A DNA stretch of 63,299 bases, filler included, from Reticulomyxa filosa (Eukaryota; Protista; Foraminifera): NCBI GenBank assembly GCA_000512085.1. It is 21 parts of 21 records of this genome, joined end to end, with 100 filler letters (N's around TTAATTAATTAA, not from the genome) between each part and the next. Parts side by side here need not be neighbours in the genome. Positions count along the whole stretch, not along the records: positions 36,712 to 41,764 come from ASPP01019077.1; 20 more parts are not named here. One strand, 5' to 3'. The notes under the pieces were generated by a model, which ran no database searches, was not told the DNA's origin, and saw only the letters and a program-made list of their open reading frames with translations. The translations under genes and the position numbers were made by a program. Of the stretch, positions 3,801 to 41,924 are shown one piece after another (position 1 is the stretch's first letter; every line of letters begins with the position of its first letter).

Positions 3801-6800
3801 GTATTATTTGTATGTGTATGCAAGACTTTTGTCTTTTTGACACATTTTGCTCTGTTATTTGTTGCCATATTTTATAAGATATTTGTTTTTATCATTTATT
3901 TAATATGCAAGCGATATACTATACGTACTCCTCCCTCCTCCCCCTCCCTTTTTTTCCCACTTACAAACATGCATATTTAATCTTTCAAACAAAATTTGAA
4001 GATGACATAACAAATAGGGGAGGGGGGGAGGAAAAAAAAAAAAAAAAAAAGGATTGAAATTCAAATGAAAAAAAAAAAAAAAAATTAGTAGCAACATGAC
4101 GTACAAGAACTAATGCGCGTTTTGTTTGATGCGGTGGACCGAACATTGGGACGTGTTGGGCAAGTGAACTTTTTGAATAAATTTGTCACGGCACTTTGGT
4201 GGACTACTTGGATTGCCAAGATTGTCATTCCGAAAGATCCAGAGAAGACTCTTTCCTGGACTTGTCTTTGTTCATTGAACGCATGAACTCGCTCGAGCAA
4301 GCACTTTCCAATTTCATTGAGCCAGGTTTTTATCTTCTTTGTTTTTTTTTTTGAATGACAGCCTTAATACTAATGCGAAACGTCTGCACGTGATGACGCA
4401 TACATTCATATACACATATACACATAGAAACATTATCCGGAGACAATCAAGTGACCTGTGAGCCATGCAACAAAAAGTGCAATTTTAAGAAAGGTTTAAA
4501 GTTCAAGACTTTGCCACCACTTTTGTTTATTCAACTTAAAGTTGTGTATTTTTATTTTGTTTTTAATGGTGTATGTTGCCCCCCCCGCCCCTTTTTTTTT
4601 TTCCTCTCATATTTGTCCATGAAGAGAACGGGGAAGGGGGGAAAGGGGGGGGGAGGGAAGGGGAAAAGGAAAAAAAAACTAGTTTTTTTTTTGGGGGGGG
4701 GGGTGGGGGTGGAATGAAATAGAGATTTTATTTCGACTGGGCATCAAATCGACGTGTGAAATTAAGCCATCGAGTAACGTTCCCAACGCTACTGGATATG
4801 CGAAAATGGACGGATCCGAGAATCATCGGCGATCAATCGAAAGAGGAGAACTCGGACTTGTTGTACGAGTTGTATGGAGTGATCATCCAATCGGGCGGCG
4901 CCTCGGGTGGACACTACTACGCGTATATCCGATCGTTTGAAAATGGTAAGTGGTACAACTTCAACGACTCGTCGGTGACGGAGTTGAAAGAAGACGACTG
5001 GAAGAATGCCTTTGGCGAGGAAAACGCCAACGGTACGGGTTACGTTCTCGCTTATCGTCGTAAAAACCTGTCTTTGCCGAAAAACATTGACTACGTGCCA
5101 CCACATCTTAAAGCAATGGCTGAAGTTTGGATATATACATATATGTATATATGTATATATATATTTTATTTTTTTCTTTCATTTTATTTATTTTATTTAT
5201 TTTTTTTTTTTTGAGAAAAGAAAGAAGATAAGCTTGCTCGAGAACAATACGAGAAATGGCAAAAGCAAATGCGAATGGTGTCGCTGCATATTCACTATCC
5301 GAACGACAGCAACAGCGAAGAGGACAATGAGAAGGTGGTGACCGTCGACCCAAAGGAAACCAACTTTCGACAACTGAAAACGCTCGTCCGAGACCTGCTC
5401 GAAGTGACCGAGGACAAAGTGCCCTCGCATCGCTGTCGGCTGCGCAAGTACCATCCGAAAATCAAGTTCATGGCCGAAGGCTATGACGACGAGGGCATTC
5501 AAGACAGTCCTTTGGAAATCGTCAAGTTCTCCAAAATGGACACACATTTGATCTTGGAAGTGCTCAAAGACGAGCAGTCGTCCTTTGACTACTTTAACCC
5601 CAGCGATCTGCTCATCTCGCTGTTCATTGTCACTGACAAAAACATGCACGCCATTGTGGAAAGGGGGTTCGTTCAAACGTCGTTGCTTATGCAGCAAGAC
5701 TTGCCTGAAGGTGTTTTTTTTTTTAAAAAATACAAGTTCCCCCTTTTTTTTTTTTTGTCATTTTACAAACATTCATTTTTTTTTTTTCAAAAAAAAAAGG
5801 GCTTTACCACGATCATTGTGGATGGCTCAAAACCTTTGAACGAAATCAAGCCGATAATTTTGAACAAGCTGAAGACAGAGCGCATACTGCCACAAGACTG
5901 GACAGACCCTTTGAAGATCAACCTAATCCGCTTTGGCTATCAAAAATGCGTCGTGTTTATACCCACGGATAAGTGCAAGTCATTGGCCGACTTTAATGTG
6001 AAGCTGGGTGACATGTTGTATGTGGAATACCAGCCCGATGTCAGTGCAGTTCCAACAACAACAACAACAACAACAACAACAGCAATAACAGCAACAGATG
6101 AAAATGATGATGATGATGATGATGATGGTAATGGTAATGGTAATGGTGCACAAACAAATGTGACCGACACAGCATCAGTATCCGAGTCAACAGCAATAAC
6201 AACAGCAGCAGCAATAGTGGGGATGACAGAAGATGCATCGATGACATTGGAAGAAAAGGAAGTGAAAGAAGAGTCACAACGCATCCAACGCGAACGAGAG
6301 GAAGTGTATCAAATATCAAAGCTCGCCAAGTATTACGAGGAACAGCGACTGAAGATCACGATAACGTATAATACTCCTCTGTCGACCAAGCTTCCACGAC
6401 AAGCAATGGAAGAACTAATCAGGAACGAGGCCGGACAACAAGGTCCGGGTGCCAATGTCGAGGAAAGGGTTTCATTCGATCACGCCATTCGCATCAGCAA
6501 AGACGCACCTCTCTTCCAACTGAAAGAGGAAATCAGCAAGAAACTGGGTATCCCGTCGCACGAATTCCGTTTACGCAAGTCCAGAAATGGCCAGGAATTT
6601 CGCAACTTGAACAAGTCGCTGTCGCATTACAGCGTCGCCGATGGCGGTATTGTGTACGTCGAAAAGGGCGTCTCCACCAAACCCAACGAAATCAAAGTGT
6701 CCTTTGCGCTGTATGATCCTCTCAAACGATGGACGGACCCGTGGAAAAATGTCAAGACCTTGTATCGCGATCTCTTTGAGTTTCCCTTTGACAAAAACAT

Positions 6801-36711: not shown

Positions 36712-37611
36712 GGGGGGAGAGAGGAGAGGAAATACCTAGAAAAGAATTGTGATTAGTCATGTGATAGGAAGGAATATAGAAAACCCAGGAAACGACCATA
36801 AAGATACCAAAAAATCAGTGATGAGACAGAGCCAGTTAAACAAAAACACGTTAAAACTAAGAGCCTGTGCAAAGACCAAAGACTTGGCAGAGACGGAAAT
36901 CATGGACAATAAGATGGACGTCAAAGCAACGTGGTCCAATTTTTGATAATAAACTATCGCTCCGATTTGAATGAGCGTTTGCGGGAATGACTCCACAACC
37001 GCTTCTAATATGAACCCCATATGCTTACGTAATTGAACATGCACCCAGTTTTCAATTGGCGGTTCTATCGCTCCTTTCATATACAAGTATAAATATAAAT
37101 ATAAATTAAATAGAAATATATCAATGAAATATATACATATATACATATATATATACATATATATATACATATATATATATATATGTATAAAGGTTTATGA
37201 TTTTATGTGCATGTATCTGCATATTTTACCTTGTAAACCGTGATCTACGACATCTAATCCCAATGACTTCAACAATTGCGACAACTGATTGTTCGGAATC
37301 GAACACCAATAAATGATAAATGACAACACAGGCGCGAATGGCAACGTGCAAAAAAATACACACAGTTGAAACAAAAATGATCTGTCCCCGCTAAATCGTA
37401 TTGTAAAGGCGAAGCAATAACACAACTGTGCTATCACAATTGTTGTCACCCCGAGCGCAAAAAACTCATACTGCTTTCGCTCGTGGTACCTTTGCATCAT
37501 CCACAAATCGGTACACACATCCGCTATTGACACACAGATTGCGAGACCGTCGTACCAATGAGATAATATAAATTTCAAGCATTGACCATGCTCGTTTACC
37601 AGACGAGGCAT
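36712..37611 (-). CDS. XK-related (XKR scramblase-like) membrane protein, 3' truncated
   Basis: ADVCTDLW in TM1 and EAVVESFPQTLIQ (XK-family ES.PQ motif); (TA)n intron at ~37229-37074. Confidence 0.7.
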
Positions 37612-37968: not shown

Positions 37969-38629
37969 ATGTCAAAAAAACCAAAAAAGGGTTCAAAAGG
38001 ACAAAAGAAAAAAGAAGCAGAAGAAAAAAGAAGGCAACAAGAGGAACTGTTACGTCTGAAGCAAGAAGAAGAAAGAAAACAACAAGAGGAACTTGAAAGG
38101 CAAAAACGTGAGCAAGAAGAAAGAGAGCGATTGTTGCGAGAACAATTAAAACAAGAGGTGAGACACAGTTTAAACAAATAGGAATAACATTAATAAAGTT
38201 GTTTATATAAAGTAGCGCAAGAACCTGTTTTTTTCCCCCCCCCCCTCCCCTCTCCCCCCTCTTTGCAAACAAATCAATGTAGGAAATATTGCGACTGACA
38301 CAAGAAAAAGAAGAAGATAACACGTGGACCCAATCAAGAGAAGAGGATTTGAAAAGATTAATAGAGGAGGAGGTCAGAACAAACGAATGGAACAAACATT
38401 TGCAATGCAATTCAAAGATTGATATTAAACATGAAAAGGAGTTAAATGACTTCATGAGTATTTGGACAGATAATAAGACCATTATATCCACAGCTCTTAA
38501 AGATTTGATGGGTTACGTATGTATAGATACATTATTTTATTTAATTAATTATAAAAAAAAAAATTTCTTTTAAATAAATGTTTATTTGCAAAATAAAACA
38601 AAACAAAACAAAACAAAACAAAACAAAAC

Positions 38630-38662
<33 letters not shown>

Positions 38663-40794
38663 GATCGAATTGATCCGATAATCGAAGAGTGCGATGAAGG
38701 ACTAGCATTGCTACCAGACATACAAGATATGGAATTGGAGAGTTTATGCAGTGATAACTTGCTCAGAGGACGATATTTTGCTTGTAAGTACGAAGAGATT
38801 TTCGACATAGTATTGACGAAGTTGCATATATTGACAAGTAAGTGTTTGTCCCATGAACACTTCTCTTCGGTCCATCAAAGAAACGAGACAACAGGCATGG
38901 AAGAGTCTTATCAATGCGTTGTCAAGTCCAATGTGTTTTGGTGCTTGTGGTCATCTGCTATGACAAACGTGTTCAAAAATATCAAAATTGAGTTTAACAA
39001 GGCCAGTATTGCTATCGAATTGCCGAAACAAGTGGCAATGAAAGCACAAATGCCATTAAGCTGCCACGTCATTTGCACGTATACATTTCTTTAAAAAATA
39101 AAAAATAATAATAAAAAAAATCCTTTATTAATGTCTATCAAAGATGATGCAAACACTTTTATCCATCTCTTTTGTTTGTTTGTTTTGCTTTTTTGTCTTT
39201 TCTCACATTTTGTTCGTCCTCCTCTTTGATTTCGTAAGTGCACATGATCTGAACATTCATTGCAACAAGGGACAATATGAATGTGCAAGCCCAGTGTTAC
39301 GAATACAATTACTTAAACTGCCATCACCTCCTAGAATGATGAGTACATGGAAAGTTCAAGTCATCACTCCGGATGTTGAAAGTGCTGAGGTGTGGGATTA
39401 TGGCCGAAAGTCTGAAGTCAACGAAAACGCACCCGAAGTTTAAAACATAACAATACTAAAAAAAAAAAAAAAGCCAATTGTTTTTAATGAAAACAAACAT
39501 CATCCCACATATTGACATGGCACTAGTTAGTGAATATCGTTTGGAAAGTCCCTTCCAGAGTGTTTGTTTCAGACAAAGTTGACCTGGGATGGTGGGATCA
39601 TAATACTAAAGAATGGAAAGTACAAGACTTTAAGGACATCAAGTATTATTGATACAATTTTTGAAAATCTATGCAAGATGTTTATTTTCTGCTCATTTTC
39701 AATTCTCAAACTATTTAAGAAAGGGAGCAAAACAAAAACTTTTTGCTTCACAAACTGGCAAGTCCAGGGAATTAAGCCTTTTTAAAAAAGAATCACCAAC
39801 CTTTCAAAGCGTAATTGTATTTGTTTGTCAAAATTATTTACAGATGGAATGAAAAGAGCCGCTCATTAGAATTTGTAACAGCACATTTGGCTCCATTGTG
39901 CATAGTGGCTCCAAGAGGCATGTTTTTTCAGCATAAAAAGTGGAGGCTGCTTCCAATTGAGACTGAGCGTTGTCAGCTGATATTGGAAGAAGAAAAGATT
40001 GAAATTACAATTGAAATTACACGTGATTCGGTGTGCCTAGTAGGCCCAGACATACCACCATTGAAACAATTACTAAAACGATCTATGAAACCTTATCAAC
40101 TGATTCGAGTTATCAAAAAAAAAAGAGTAAATGCTTTGTTGTATTCGTCTCTTATTCTTTTGTATGTTAATTCAACAACGACAGAATCTAAGGGAACATG
40201 GCATAAACATTTGCCCAAACGATGAGGATATTAGAATTTTAGCAATGACAAACAAAAGCAAGGAAATCCAAACTAGAGCGCATAGAGAAATCTCTACGTG
40301 CGCACTCTATCTTTTTTTTTTGTTTCCACACTTTCCAAGCATAATTGTCTTTAAATACTTAACAGAATTGTCTCACATTTTGAGCTTAGTCGCTCGAAAT
40401 GGAATAAAGAGGGAAAAACAAATGAAGTATTTTTTCAGCTACGCAACGTGTTACTGTCTTCTGAGAAAATGGATCCAGTTCCTAATGGAGAACAAAGCTG
40501 GAAATTAGTAATGATTAATGAAGAAAAGTGTATTTTAGTTGACTCTAATGAATCCTGTGACACTTTAAATACTGAAATTTTCAAAGCTGAAGTTAAAAAA
40601 AGCCTAACAAATGTATACTGTAGAAAATATCACAACCAATCAATAAACAAACTCAGCTCTCTCACACAACTCTACGACGATGTCTGTTAGCTCATTGGCT
40701 TAATGATCCCAAAACTGAGTTGAATTCAGCGCCGATTATGTTCCAACACACAATTGAACAGTGCTTGAACTTGTTAAAATTGTTCCATACTTAA
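37969..40794 (+). CDS. CASC1/DNAI7/IC97-like axonemal dynein-associated protein, multi-exon
   Basis: K/E-rich N-terminal coiled coil, WNKHLQC...ELNDFMSIW, CLWS, LLKLPSPP, KKWRLLP and REHGINICP follow the CASC1 family pattern. Confidence 0.75.
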
Positions 40795-41077
40795 AAAGCA
40801 CTAAATTTTTTGAAAAAAGTGTGCCTTCTTCGTCACATTTTGCTTGTCTTGATCATCTATTATATAAATTTTATAAACATTAGTGCCGTTGTACTTTGTC
40901 CAGCGCTTTGGAAAATAAAAACAAAAACTTGAAAAAATTTCAAATCTTTTGGAATGAAAATGGTGTATCTTGAAATTCTCTAATTTTGCCAAACATACGT
41001 TATGCACGTTGACAGAAAAAATATATCAGCAAATATTCAACTTTGTATTGATTTTCCCAAATTTTCGCTGCTTCGTT

Positions 41078-41168
41078 AAAACTCGGTTTCGCCCTTCCGC
41101 TGGGCTCTTCAGTACACTCCAGAAGTGTAGACCGGTTTCGCCCTCCATTGGGCTCATCAGTACTCTCA
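41078..41168 (-). ncRNA. Tandem, interleaved hammerhead ribozymes
   Basis: Minus strand: CUGAUGA-GCCC(AAUGGA)GGGC-GAAA-CCGGUC^-UACACU(UCUGG)AGUGUA-CUGAAGA-GCCC(AGCGGAA)GGGC-GAAA-CCGAGUU. Cores at 41160-41154 and 41112-41106; GUC cleavage site between 41130 and 41129. Confidence 0.9.
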
Positions 41169-41580
41169 GGACGGATGGAAAAGGGGATTAGCCTACATCA
41201 TCCTCTTGGGTAACCACTGTAGTAATTCCCAGCCATCCCCCAGTCTGCACCGGTGGTGCTATAGGGTTCGGTGGTTAACTGGGAAAGTCCGGTAACTTGT
41301 CTGCGCAAGGGCCGACCTCTCCTAGAGGCCGTCTGCATGCGGAGCAGAGGTTACGTCGACTACAGGGCTCCCAAGCCCCCATAGAGATGTCGTACCATGA
41401 GGGTCCCCGGCAGAGTAAAGGGTGGGGCTGCTCTATGAGCGCCAACGTCCTTCCCTCCCAGGACTTCCGCAGCCAGTCCTATCTATCCAGTAGTTAGGAC
41501 AGAAGGCCTATCGGCTCCCCTTCTTTCGCCGGTCCGGCTGCAGGCAGCGGGCATCTCCCTAAGAAAGAGCAGACCAGTCA
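41080..41580 (-). mobile_element. Non-autonomous, GC-rich, structured hammerhead-bearing insertion (retrozyme or Penelope pLTR-like)
   Basis: About 57-62% GC in two lines counted, against AT-rich flanks; many hairpins; ribozymes at one end; removing it rejoins a reading frame. Confidence 0.7.
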
Positions 41581-41924
41581 GTTTGCTTTTAACAAACTTC
41601 TTGCAAGGGATCAATGGCCTTGTCCTTGTCCATGACAGCGCTCAAACTGTCAGCCACTTTGTTGAAGCCTTGCTTCACTCCATTCCAGGCTGTTTCTACG
41701 GTGGCTCCGATCATTACGTACAATTTGTTTTCAACGCTGTAAGCCATCTTCGATTTCACTGAATNNNNNNNNNNNNNNNNNNNNNNNNNNNNNNNNNNNN
41801 NNNNNNNNTTAATTAATTAANNNNNNNNNNNNNNNNNNNNNNNNNNNNNNNNNNNNNNNNNNNNTTTTTTTTTTTTTTAAAAAATGTTATTATGACAACG
41901 TCAATATCCAAACAAACAAACAAA

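Follow-up and report, generated by a model that had tools for sequence, protein, structure and literature searches.

A tandem pair of hammerhead ribozyme units in Reticulomyxa filosa, predicted to act as a single type III hammerhead

Introduction

A short contig in the genome assembly of the foraminiferan Reticulomyxa filosa carries, on its minus strand, two hammerhead ribozyme cores so close to each other that both can be drawn around one and the same GUC. The question raised by this locus is whether the cores belong to two ribozymes with alternative folds of equal standing, or whether one fold prevails, and what kind of DNA carries them. The invariants of a hammerhead are C3 U4 G5 A6 N7 G8 A9, G12 A13 A14, the A15.1–U16.1 pair, and a cleavable N-U-H triplet. 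According to the original prediction, made from the sequence, the upstream core (core 1) was a type I hammerhead with a palindromic ACCGGU helix III, the downstream core (core 2) was a complete type III hammerhead, and the two formed an intramolecular double hammerhead with a link to Penelope-like elements or retrozymes, in a host from which no such ribozyme was known to have been described.

The window that we analyzed is a stretch of 63,299 nt, filler included, joined from 21 parts of the assembly GCA_000512085.1. The locus lies in the 5053-nt piece that comes from contig ASPP01019077.1 and ends at position 41764; positions count along the whole window.

Results

Two units and one usable cleavage site

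On the minus strand, positions 41167 to 41078 form two similar hammerhead units with a period of 48 nt, and the cores start 48 nt apart (Table 1). In all, the 48-nt unit is present in tandem one and a half times. Every invariant core nucleotide was found in both units, together with the G10.1–C11.1 and A15.1–U16.1 pairs and C17. Only one cleavage site is usable, the GUC at 41132–41130, where the cut is predicted to fall between 41130 and 41129. Unit 2 has a GUU of its own, but the bases that follow it pair with neither stem I strand, and since this GUU is left without a stem I partner there is a single usable site at the locus. The strings and minus-strand coordinates of the original prediction, including the 48-nt spacing of the cores and the position of the GUC, were correct, and its statement that the GUC is shared holds in the sense that both cores are sequence-complete and can be drawn around it. 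A third, decayed hammerhead unit upstream and partial units within the GC-rich block that carries the pair were considered, and neither was significant.

Some stretches have a part in both folds. The segment UACACUU (41129–41123), which opens the stem I hairpin of the type III fold, doubles as the 3′ strand of unit 1 stem I, where its pairing with GAGAGUA carries an A·A mismatch. In the type I fold, the palindromic CCGG is a tetraloop closed by A15.1 and U16.1, and in the type III fold the GAAA and CCGGU bases of unit 1 serve as the 5′ strand of stem III. Helix II of unit 1 is present in all predicted folds.

Table 1. Positions of the ribozyme parts and of neighboring features in the 5053-nt piece, numbered along the window.
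Feature	Position	Strand	Basis
Unit 1 stem I, 5′ strand GAGAGUA	41161..41167	-	Sequence, HH9 alignment, constrained fold
Core 1, CUGAUGA (C3–A9)	41154..41160	-	Sequence, descriptor
Unit 1 helix II, GCCC / 6-nt loop AAUGGA / GGGC, including the G10.1–C11.1 pair	41140..41153	-	
Core 1 GAAA (41139–41136), then CCGGUC; C17 = 41130	41130..41139	-	
Type III stem I hairpin, UACACUU / loop CUG / GAGUGUA, 7 bp, one G·U	41113..41129	-	MFE folds, Hammerhead_3 alignment
Unit 2 stem I, 5′ strand GAGUGUA	41119–41113	-	
Core 2, CUGAAGA (C3–A9, N7 = A)	41106..41112	-	Sequence, descriptor, Hammerhead_3 alignment
Unit 2 helix II, GCCC / 7-nt loop AGCGGAA / GGGC	41091..41105	-	
Core 2 GAAA (41090–41087), then stem III 3′ strand ACCG, bulged A, GUUUU	41078..41090	-	
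GC-rich (58%) non-coding block ending in the hammerhead pair	41066..41573	-	Composition change points, end of RFI_01644 homology
Truncated, frameshifted paralogue fragment of R. filosa RFI_01644	41574..41764	-	Nucleotide and protein alignment
Multi-exon CASC1/DNAI7 gene with short AT-rich introns	37969 to ~40690	+	One exon matches Casc1_N, E 7e-10
138-codon ORF	37195–37611	-	Borderline XK-related (PF09815), 25.4 bits versus cutoff 24.8

A descriptor that requires CUGANGA, then at least 3 bp of helix II, and then GAAA was run on the 5053-nt piece, and it matched exactly twice, at the cores starting at 41160 and 41112. Dinucleotide shuffling gave 0.0245 sites per piece and 0.006 sites per GC-rich 705 nt, and two or more sites were found in 0.1% (piece) and 0% (705 nt) of 2000 shuffles. 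A chance origin of the pair of cores is excluded. With the Rfam covariance models, Hammerhead_3 aligned over its full length to 41137→41081 with 34.0 bits (E 2e-6 on 73 nt), a match that appears once core 1 is omitted from the searched sequence, and the best Rfam match of unit 1 was Hammerhead_HH9 with 22.4 bits (E 0.0017 on 221 nt, E 0.04 on the 5-kb piece). The covariance-model check of the prediction gave significant E values for both units on the short segments, but both scores missed the curated gathering scores (48.5 for Hammerhead_3 and 52 for HH9), and for a single family in a 320-Mb genome the E values become approximately 0.002 and 0.6, respectively. A weak match to the C/D-box snoRNA sR41 (41142–41205, minus strand, 12.5 bits) was set aside as coincidental; its box C and D strings are the hammerhead CUGAUGA and CUGA.

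When the two units were aligned, they differed at 5 of 36 positions (~14%), namely at N7, at one position of the stem I strand, and at three of loop 2. The 21 constrained positions are all identical (hypergeometric p = 0.008). This confinement of all five differences to unconstrained positions suggests that both cores were under selection in the past. In the stem I strand, the one position that differs is A in unit 1 and U in unit 2; as a result, the substrate strand is a perfect partner of unit 2 and has the A·A mismatch with unit 1. The similarity of the units ends after GAAACCG at 41084, beyond which only 3 of 14 positions are identical; the GC-rich block has its 3′ edge there as well.

Predicted folds of the pair

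The unconstrained minimum free energy (MFE) folds of 41200→41070 and 41185→41072 were both a type III hammerhead, and the energy of the type III fold is −30.3 kcal/mol. The fold has three helices, with stem I of 7 bp closed by a 3-nt loop, stem II of 4 bp, and stem III of 9 bp with one bulged A (41139–41131 with 41087–41078), and it leaves C17 and the core bases unpaired. States compatible with type III account for −31.06 of the −31.56 kcal/mol of ensemble energy. The type I fold of core 1, on the other hand, formed only under constraint, at −15.7 kcal/mol (ensemble −17.7), which makes it approximately 14 kcal/mol less stable than type III, and it was adopted by no co-transcriptional prefix. 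When the whole block (511 nt) was folded, long-range pairing replaced the type III stem III.

Pairing of the ACCGGU of unit 1 with the ACCG-A-GU of unit 2 in the type III fold sets core 2 on the GUC of unit 1; since the units are adjacent, the stem I formed between them is a hairpin, and the topology becomes that of type III. By these models the type I and type III folds are not equivalent and do not represent balanced alternatives, and the active form is most likely the predicted type III hammerhead spanning 41139→41078.

Core 1 is a canonical type I unit, an upstream duplicate with a 1-bp helix III. Because this single base pair is capped by the palindromic CCGG tetraloop, unit 1 alone cannot fold stably. 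Type I hammerheads whose helix III is a single base pair under a palindromic tetraloop need to dimerize, in tandem repeats, for efficient cleavage (PMC7229834, PMC4209133). The amphibian type I hammerheads are built in this way, and their cleavage is poor for the monomer and efficient for the dimer (PMC7229834; also PMC4209133). The assignment of core 1 to type I with a palindromic ACCGGU helix III was borne out by the sequence and by the HH9 match, and that of core 2 to a complete type III hammerhead by the unconstrained MFE fold and the Hammerhead_3 score. What did not survive is the idea that the two folds are equals, given the predicted −30.3 kcal/mol of type III against −15.7 kcal/mol of type I.

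The GC-rich block and its flanks

The pair sits at the 3′ edge, on the minus strand, of a GC-rich block, with AT-rich DNA beyond. Composition change points at 41066 and 41560 delimit approximately 495 bp, and the GC content is 0.28 to the left of the block, 0.58 inside, and 0.44 to the right. The block contains no ORF of more than 72 codons, no Pfam match, no Rfam match besides the hammerheads, and no tRNA, and it had no BLAST match in phage or plasmid collections. A bacterial or phage origin was rejected on the grounds of the missing phage and plasmid matches and the lack of ORFs. The excess of structure in the block is modest (z −1.8).

Several hallmarks of mobile elements were looked for around the pair. 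The best candidate for a target-site duplication in the flanks was no better than in shuffled sequence (p = 0.46). No tandem array was detected by TRF and no repeat of 150–450 bp, the 48-nt hammerhead unit being the sole repeat. Neither ORFs nor Pfam matches pointed to a reverse transcriptase or GIY-YIG endonuclease gene in the 5-kb piece, which ends at 41764; there was no second hammerhead in the 680 nt from the pair to the contig edge, and no primer-binding site or polypurine tract was seen by eye in the piece.

On the right, 41764→41574 aligned to the R. filosa gene RFI_01644 (contig ASPP01001609.1) with 86.6% nucleotide and 79% amino-acid identity. The fragment covers about residues 54–122 of the 495-aa partial protein RFI_01644 and reaches the contig edge. 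It has lost 32 nt between two near-repeats and gained 6 nt, a net loss of 26 nt that shifts the reading frame, and the homology stops at 41574; the other ~370 codons of the gene are nowhere in the 5-kb piece. The contig ends 13 nt from an intron–exon border of the paralogue, which is compatible with both a retrocopy and a DNA duplication, and the fragment may be either. By its composition and by the alignments, the GC-rich block appears to be a foreign-looking insert fused to a pseudogene fragment.

Two other readings of this end of the contig were discarded. A Pfam match of the ORF at 41589–41762 to PsbP (E 0.015) gave way to its identification as a fragment of a foraminiferal family (P0001, RFI_01644), and a splice donor and intron after 41589 to the paralogue alignment, with its net loss of 26 nt, frameshift, and end of homology at 41574. 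Several metatranscriptome members of the RFI_01644 family have an N-terminal PX domain (PF00787).

On the left, the piece holds a CASC1/DNAI7 gene on the plus strand (Table 1). CASC1/DNAI7 is an axonemal dynein component, and here this flagellar gene is found in an amoeboid, foraminiferan-like genome. With the RFI_01644-like fragment at its other end, the piece is thus nuclear DNA of a foraminiferan, in support of the host proposed in the original prediction. A microsatellite of the form (ATATAC/AT)n and a (CAAAA)n repeat occupy 37127–37200 and 38589–38663; the microsatellite gave spurious Rfam matches to microRNA families, and a comparable AT microsatellite is found on another R. filosa contig (L066, near 5000–5075).

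Search for relatives

In searches of metagenome, viral, and phage/plasmid collections and in searches at the protein level, neither the block nor the pair was found a second time. Exact look-ups and homology searches with the ORFs of the block or flank found nothing either. The tandem layout, used as a pattern, had two matches among 241 million metagenome records, and both were rejected as relatives of the locus, being unrelated AT-rich contigs with ordinary type I hammerheads with ACCGGU. On the metagenome contigs (Ga0116226), three type I hammerhead motifs were seen on L010 (95–330) and at least one on L009 (54–122, minus strand), with a palindromic helix III of ACCGGU or ACGCGU and a spacing of approximately 60–150 nt; L009 scored 29 bits with Hammerhead_1. 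No retroelement ORF was found on these two short contigs.

The matches of a first viral scan were six ordinary phage hammerheads and not relatives. A scan with a looser pattern gave 55 viral matches (L011–L065), in none of which a helix II formed; a single conserved prophage coding sequence accounts for most of them, and the few that remain come from unrelated sequences. This coding sequence contains CTGACGAG...CGAAA...CTGAAGAG and fits the structure-free tandem-hammerhead pattern without a helix II, and such false positives call for caution with hammerheads called by pattern only. Full-text searching of the literature gave no description of hammerheads in Foraminifera or Rhizaria, in line with the original prediction, which knew of none.

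Discussion

We favor, at slightly better than even, the joint reading that this is a genuine hammerhead locus of one and a half units, active in the type III form, at the edge of the remnant of a retroelement-like GC-rich insert. In such a ribozyme the catalytic core, helix II, and the stem III 3′ strand would come from the downstream unit. The sole substrate (the 5′ strand of stem III, the GUC, and the 3′ strand of stem I) would come from the upstream unit, and stem I would close as a tight hairpin between the units. A cut after C41130 would then release a GC-rich RNA with a 2′,3′-cyclic phosphate end and a 3′ fragment with a 5′-OH.

The GC-rich block could be what is left of the RNA of a non-autonomous retroelement related to retrozymes or Penelope-like elements, and the ribozyme would in that case have trimmed transcripts of that element. 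Eukaryotic hammerheads of such architecture are a hallmark of retrozymes and Penelope-like elements (PMC4209133, PMC7229834, bioRxiv 10.64898/2026.07.22.740005). Unit 2 and the block end within a few nucleotides of the expected cleavage site of unit 2, and this end would fit a cDNA made from an RNA whose own 3′ end came from hammerhead cleavage in a longer tandem array. The retrozyme or Penelope-like link of the original prediction is plausible, but the piece lacks a gene for a reverse transcriptase or GIY-YIG endonuclease, a tandem repeat with a period of hundreds of bp, and a second repeat with a hammerhead. Since there is no reverse transcriptase or endonuclease gene, second hammerhead repeat, significant target-site duplication, tandem array of hundreds of bp, or other copy in the collections searched, no named retroelement family was assigned.

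Other explanations must be weighed against this reading. The pair could be a bistable device of two ribozymes, in which type I, perhaps as intermolecular dimers at ACCGGU, and type III both cut the same GUC in vivo, with the choice of fold depending, for example, on the stage of transcription or on the RNA concentration. Core 1 is transcribed before core 2, it has the architecture of hammerheads that act as dimers (PMC7229834, PMC4209133), and both cores have kept all invariants while the units diverged by ~14% (p = 0.008). We nevertheless consider such a device quite unlikely, as type I is predicted to be weaker by ~14 kcal/mol and is absent from the co-transcriptional prefixes, its stem I has the A·A mismatch where that of type III is perfect, HH9 gives only 22.4 bits, and stem III of the type III fold sequesters the GAAA of core 1. 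It is also conceivable, if unlikely, that the pair was functional in its source element and the present copy is an inert relic, a dead and truncated insertion in which the AAAC/GUUU extension of stem III into the flank is fortuitous. The joining of the block to a frameshifted, truncated pseudogene fragment would be expected of a relic, and neither a partner hammerhead, ORF, or repeat nor any relative elsewhere was found; against this, the modeled sequence would still be fully competent on paper, and the structural reading is not contradicted by the status of a relic.

Hammerheads occur in mammalian 3′ UTRs and introns, and one could suppose that the host uses this one as a 3′-end or regulatory ribozyme that cuts read-through transcripts of the truncated RFI_01644-like gene. 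The position is suitable, as the motif shares the strand of the gene fragment, follows it after ~440 nt, and lies head-on to the convergent CASC1 gene, upstream of the CASC1 3′ end. We regard this as very improbable because the upstream gene copy is frameshifted and lacks ~370 codons, so that little is left to regulate, and because the block is foreign in composition to both flanks. An artefact, whether a chance motif or a chimeric assembly joining foreign GC-rich DNA to foraminiferal DNA, could be suspected from the abrupt jump in GC content at both borders, from the shortness of the contig, whose end is 13 nt away from a paralogue exon border, and from Rfam scores that are both under gathering. 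This too is hard to credit: shuffling does not yield two adjacent complete cores with helices, the block is without ORFs and without bacterial, phage, or plasmid similarity, and the sequence on both of its flanks is nuclear and Reticulomyxa-like.

Within the preferred reading of a type III hammerhead locus, a more specific and tentative proposal, which we rate as unlikely, is that the locus is an intermediate in a change of topology, where tandem duplication of a dimer-dependent type I hammerhead gave rise to a self-sufficient type III ribozyme, with both cores selected, in the service of a GC-rich, retrozyme-like foraminiferal RNA element, as yet undescribed, whose copies in the genome end at the cleavage site. 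In the same proposal, and just as tentatively, the loop of the type III stem I would be the junction between the units. The natural sequence illustrates how a weak, dimer-dependent type I hammerhead can become a stable type III hammerhead through a 48-nt tandem duplication, and a passage in PMC10085705 proposes tandem duplication as a model for the circular permutation of ribozymes.

Should the block turn out to be a multi-copy element, it would give a first hint of retrozyme-like RNAs, circular or linear, in Rhizaria. Since hammerheads are known from all domains of life, an extra host lineage is in itself a modest addition. What is new here is the host lineage together with the compact layout, the kind of ribozyme being well known, and the one-sided dimer layout would be a new variant only if both cores were shown to matter.

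Compared with the type III hammerheads of RF00008 (found in viroids, plant LTR retrozymes, bacteria, and phages), the locus has the same core, an open stem III, and stems I and II closed by loops. It differs in that the 5′ strand of stem III is also part of another hammerhead core upstream, namely its GAAA and helix III, and the score of the locus is under the gathering threshold of that family. A plant LTR retrozyme has two type III hammerheads in direct repeats approximately 600–1000 nt apart and a short target-site duplication, along with a primer-binding site and a polypurine tract. Here, neither of the latter two was seen, nor was a second repeat with a hammerhead. In plant LTR retrozymes, type III hammerheads go together with a GC content of more than 55% (PMC7229834), and the predicted type III fold here likewise has a GC-rich setting (58%).

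Unit 1 resembles the canonical metazoan type I hammerheads (amphibian satellite 2/HHR_Amex1; HH9, RF02275) in its A–U helix III with a palindromic tetraloop and in its 4-bp helix II with a 6-nt loop. Metazoan non-LTR retrozymes consist of tandem repeats of 150–450 bp with low GC content and one type I hammerhead per unit. In contrast, the present host is a protist, the period is 48 nt, the DNA is GC-rich (58%) and contains no tandem array by TRF, stem I of unit 1 has a mismatch, and no loop–loop tertiary motif was recognized. The hammerheads in the pLTRs of Penelope-like elements are likewise eukaryotic and repeat-associated, with a palindromic helix III, and are expected to work as dimers (PMC4209133). 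These minimal hammerheads have a helix II of 6–8 bp with a bulged base and a short helix I, and those of protist and fungal Penelope-like elements have a long helix III (PMC4209133), whereas helix II is 4 bp here and there is no reverse transcriptase or GIY-YIG ORF nearby. A repeat flanking a reverse transcriptase ORF, as in Penelope-like elements, is absent from the 5-kb piece, in which the contig edge at 41764 limits the view.

The closest parallel in terms of pairing is the double hammerhead, where two complete domains, each with its own cleavage site, have a common extended helix III. According to PMC4209133, which cites Forster et al. 1988, the palindromic helix III segments of two units pair there and the cores cut reciprocally. 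At the present locus, too, the palindromic helix III segments of both units are predicted to pair, and one core would act on the site of the other. The locus is not the full double hammerhead of the original prediction: the extended helix III forms in the models, but only one cleavage site has a stem I partner. Of the two active sites of a double hammerhead one exists, the stem I formed in trans becomes a hairpin, and stem III extends into the GAAA of core 1. Since core 2 would act on the GUC of unit 1 and the reciprocal site is absent, the modeled layout corresponds to one working half of a double (dimeric) hammerhead, formed in cis, rather than to two equivalent ribozymes.
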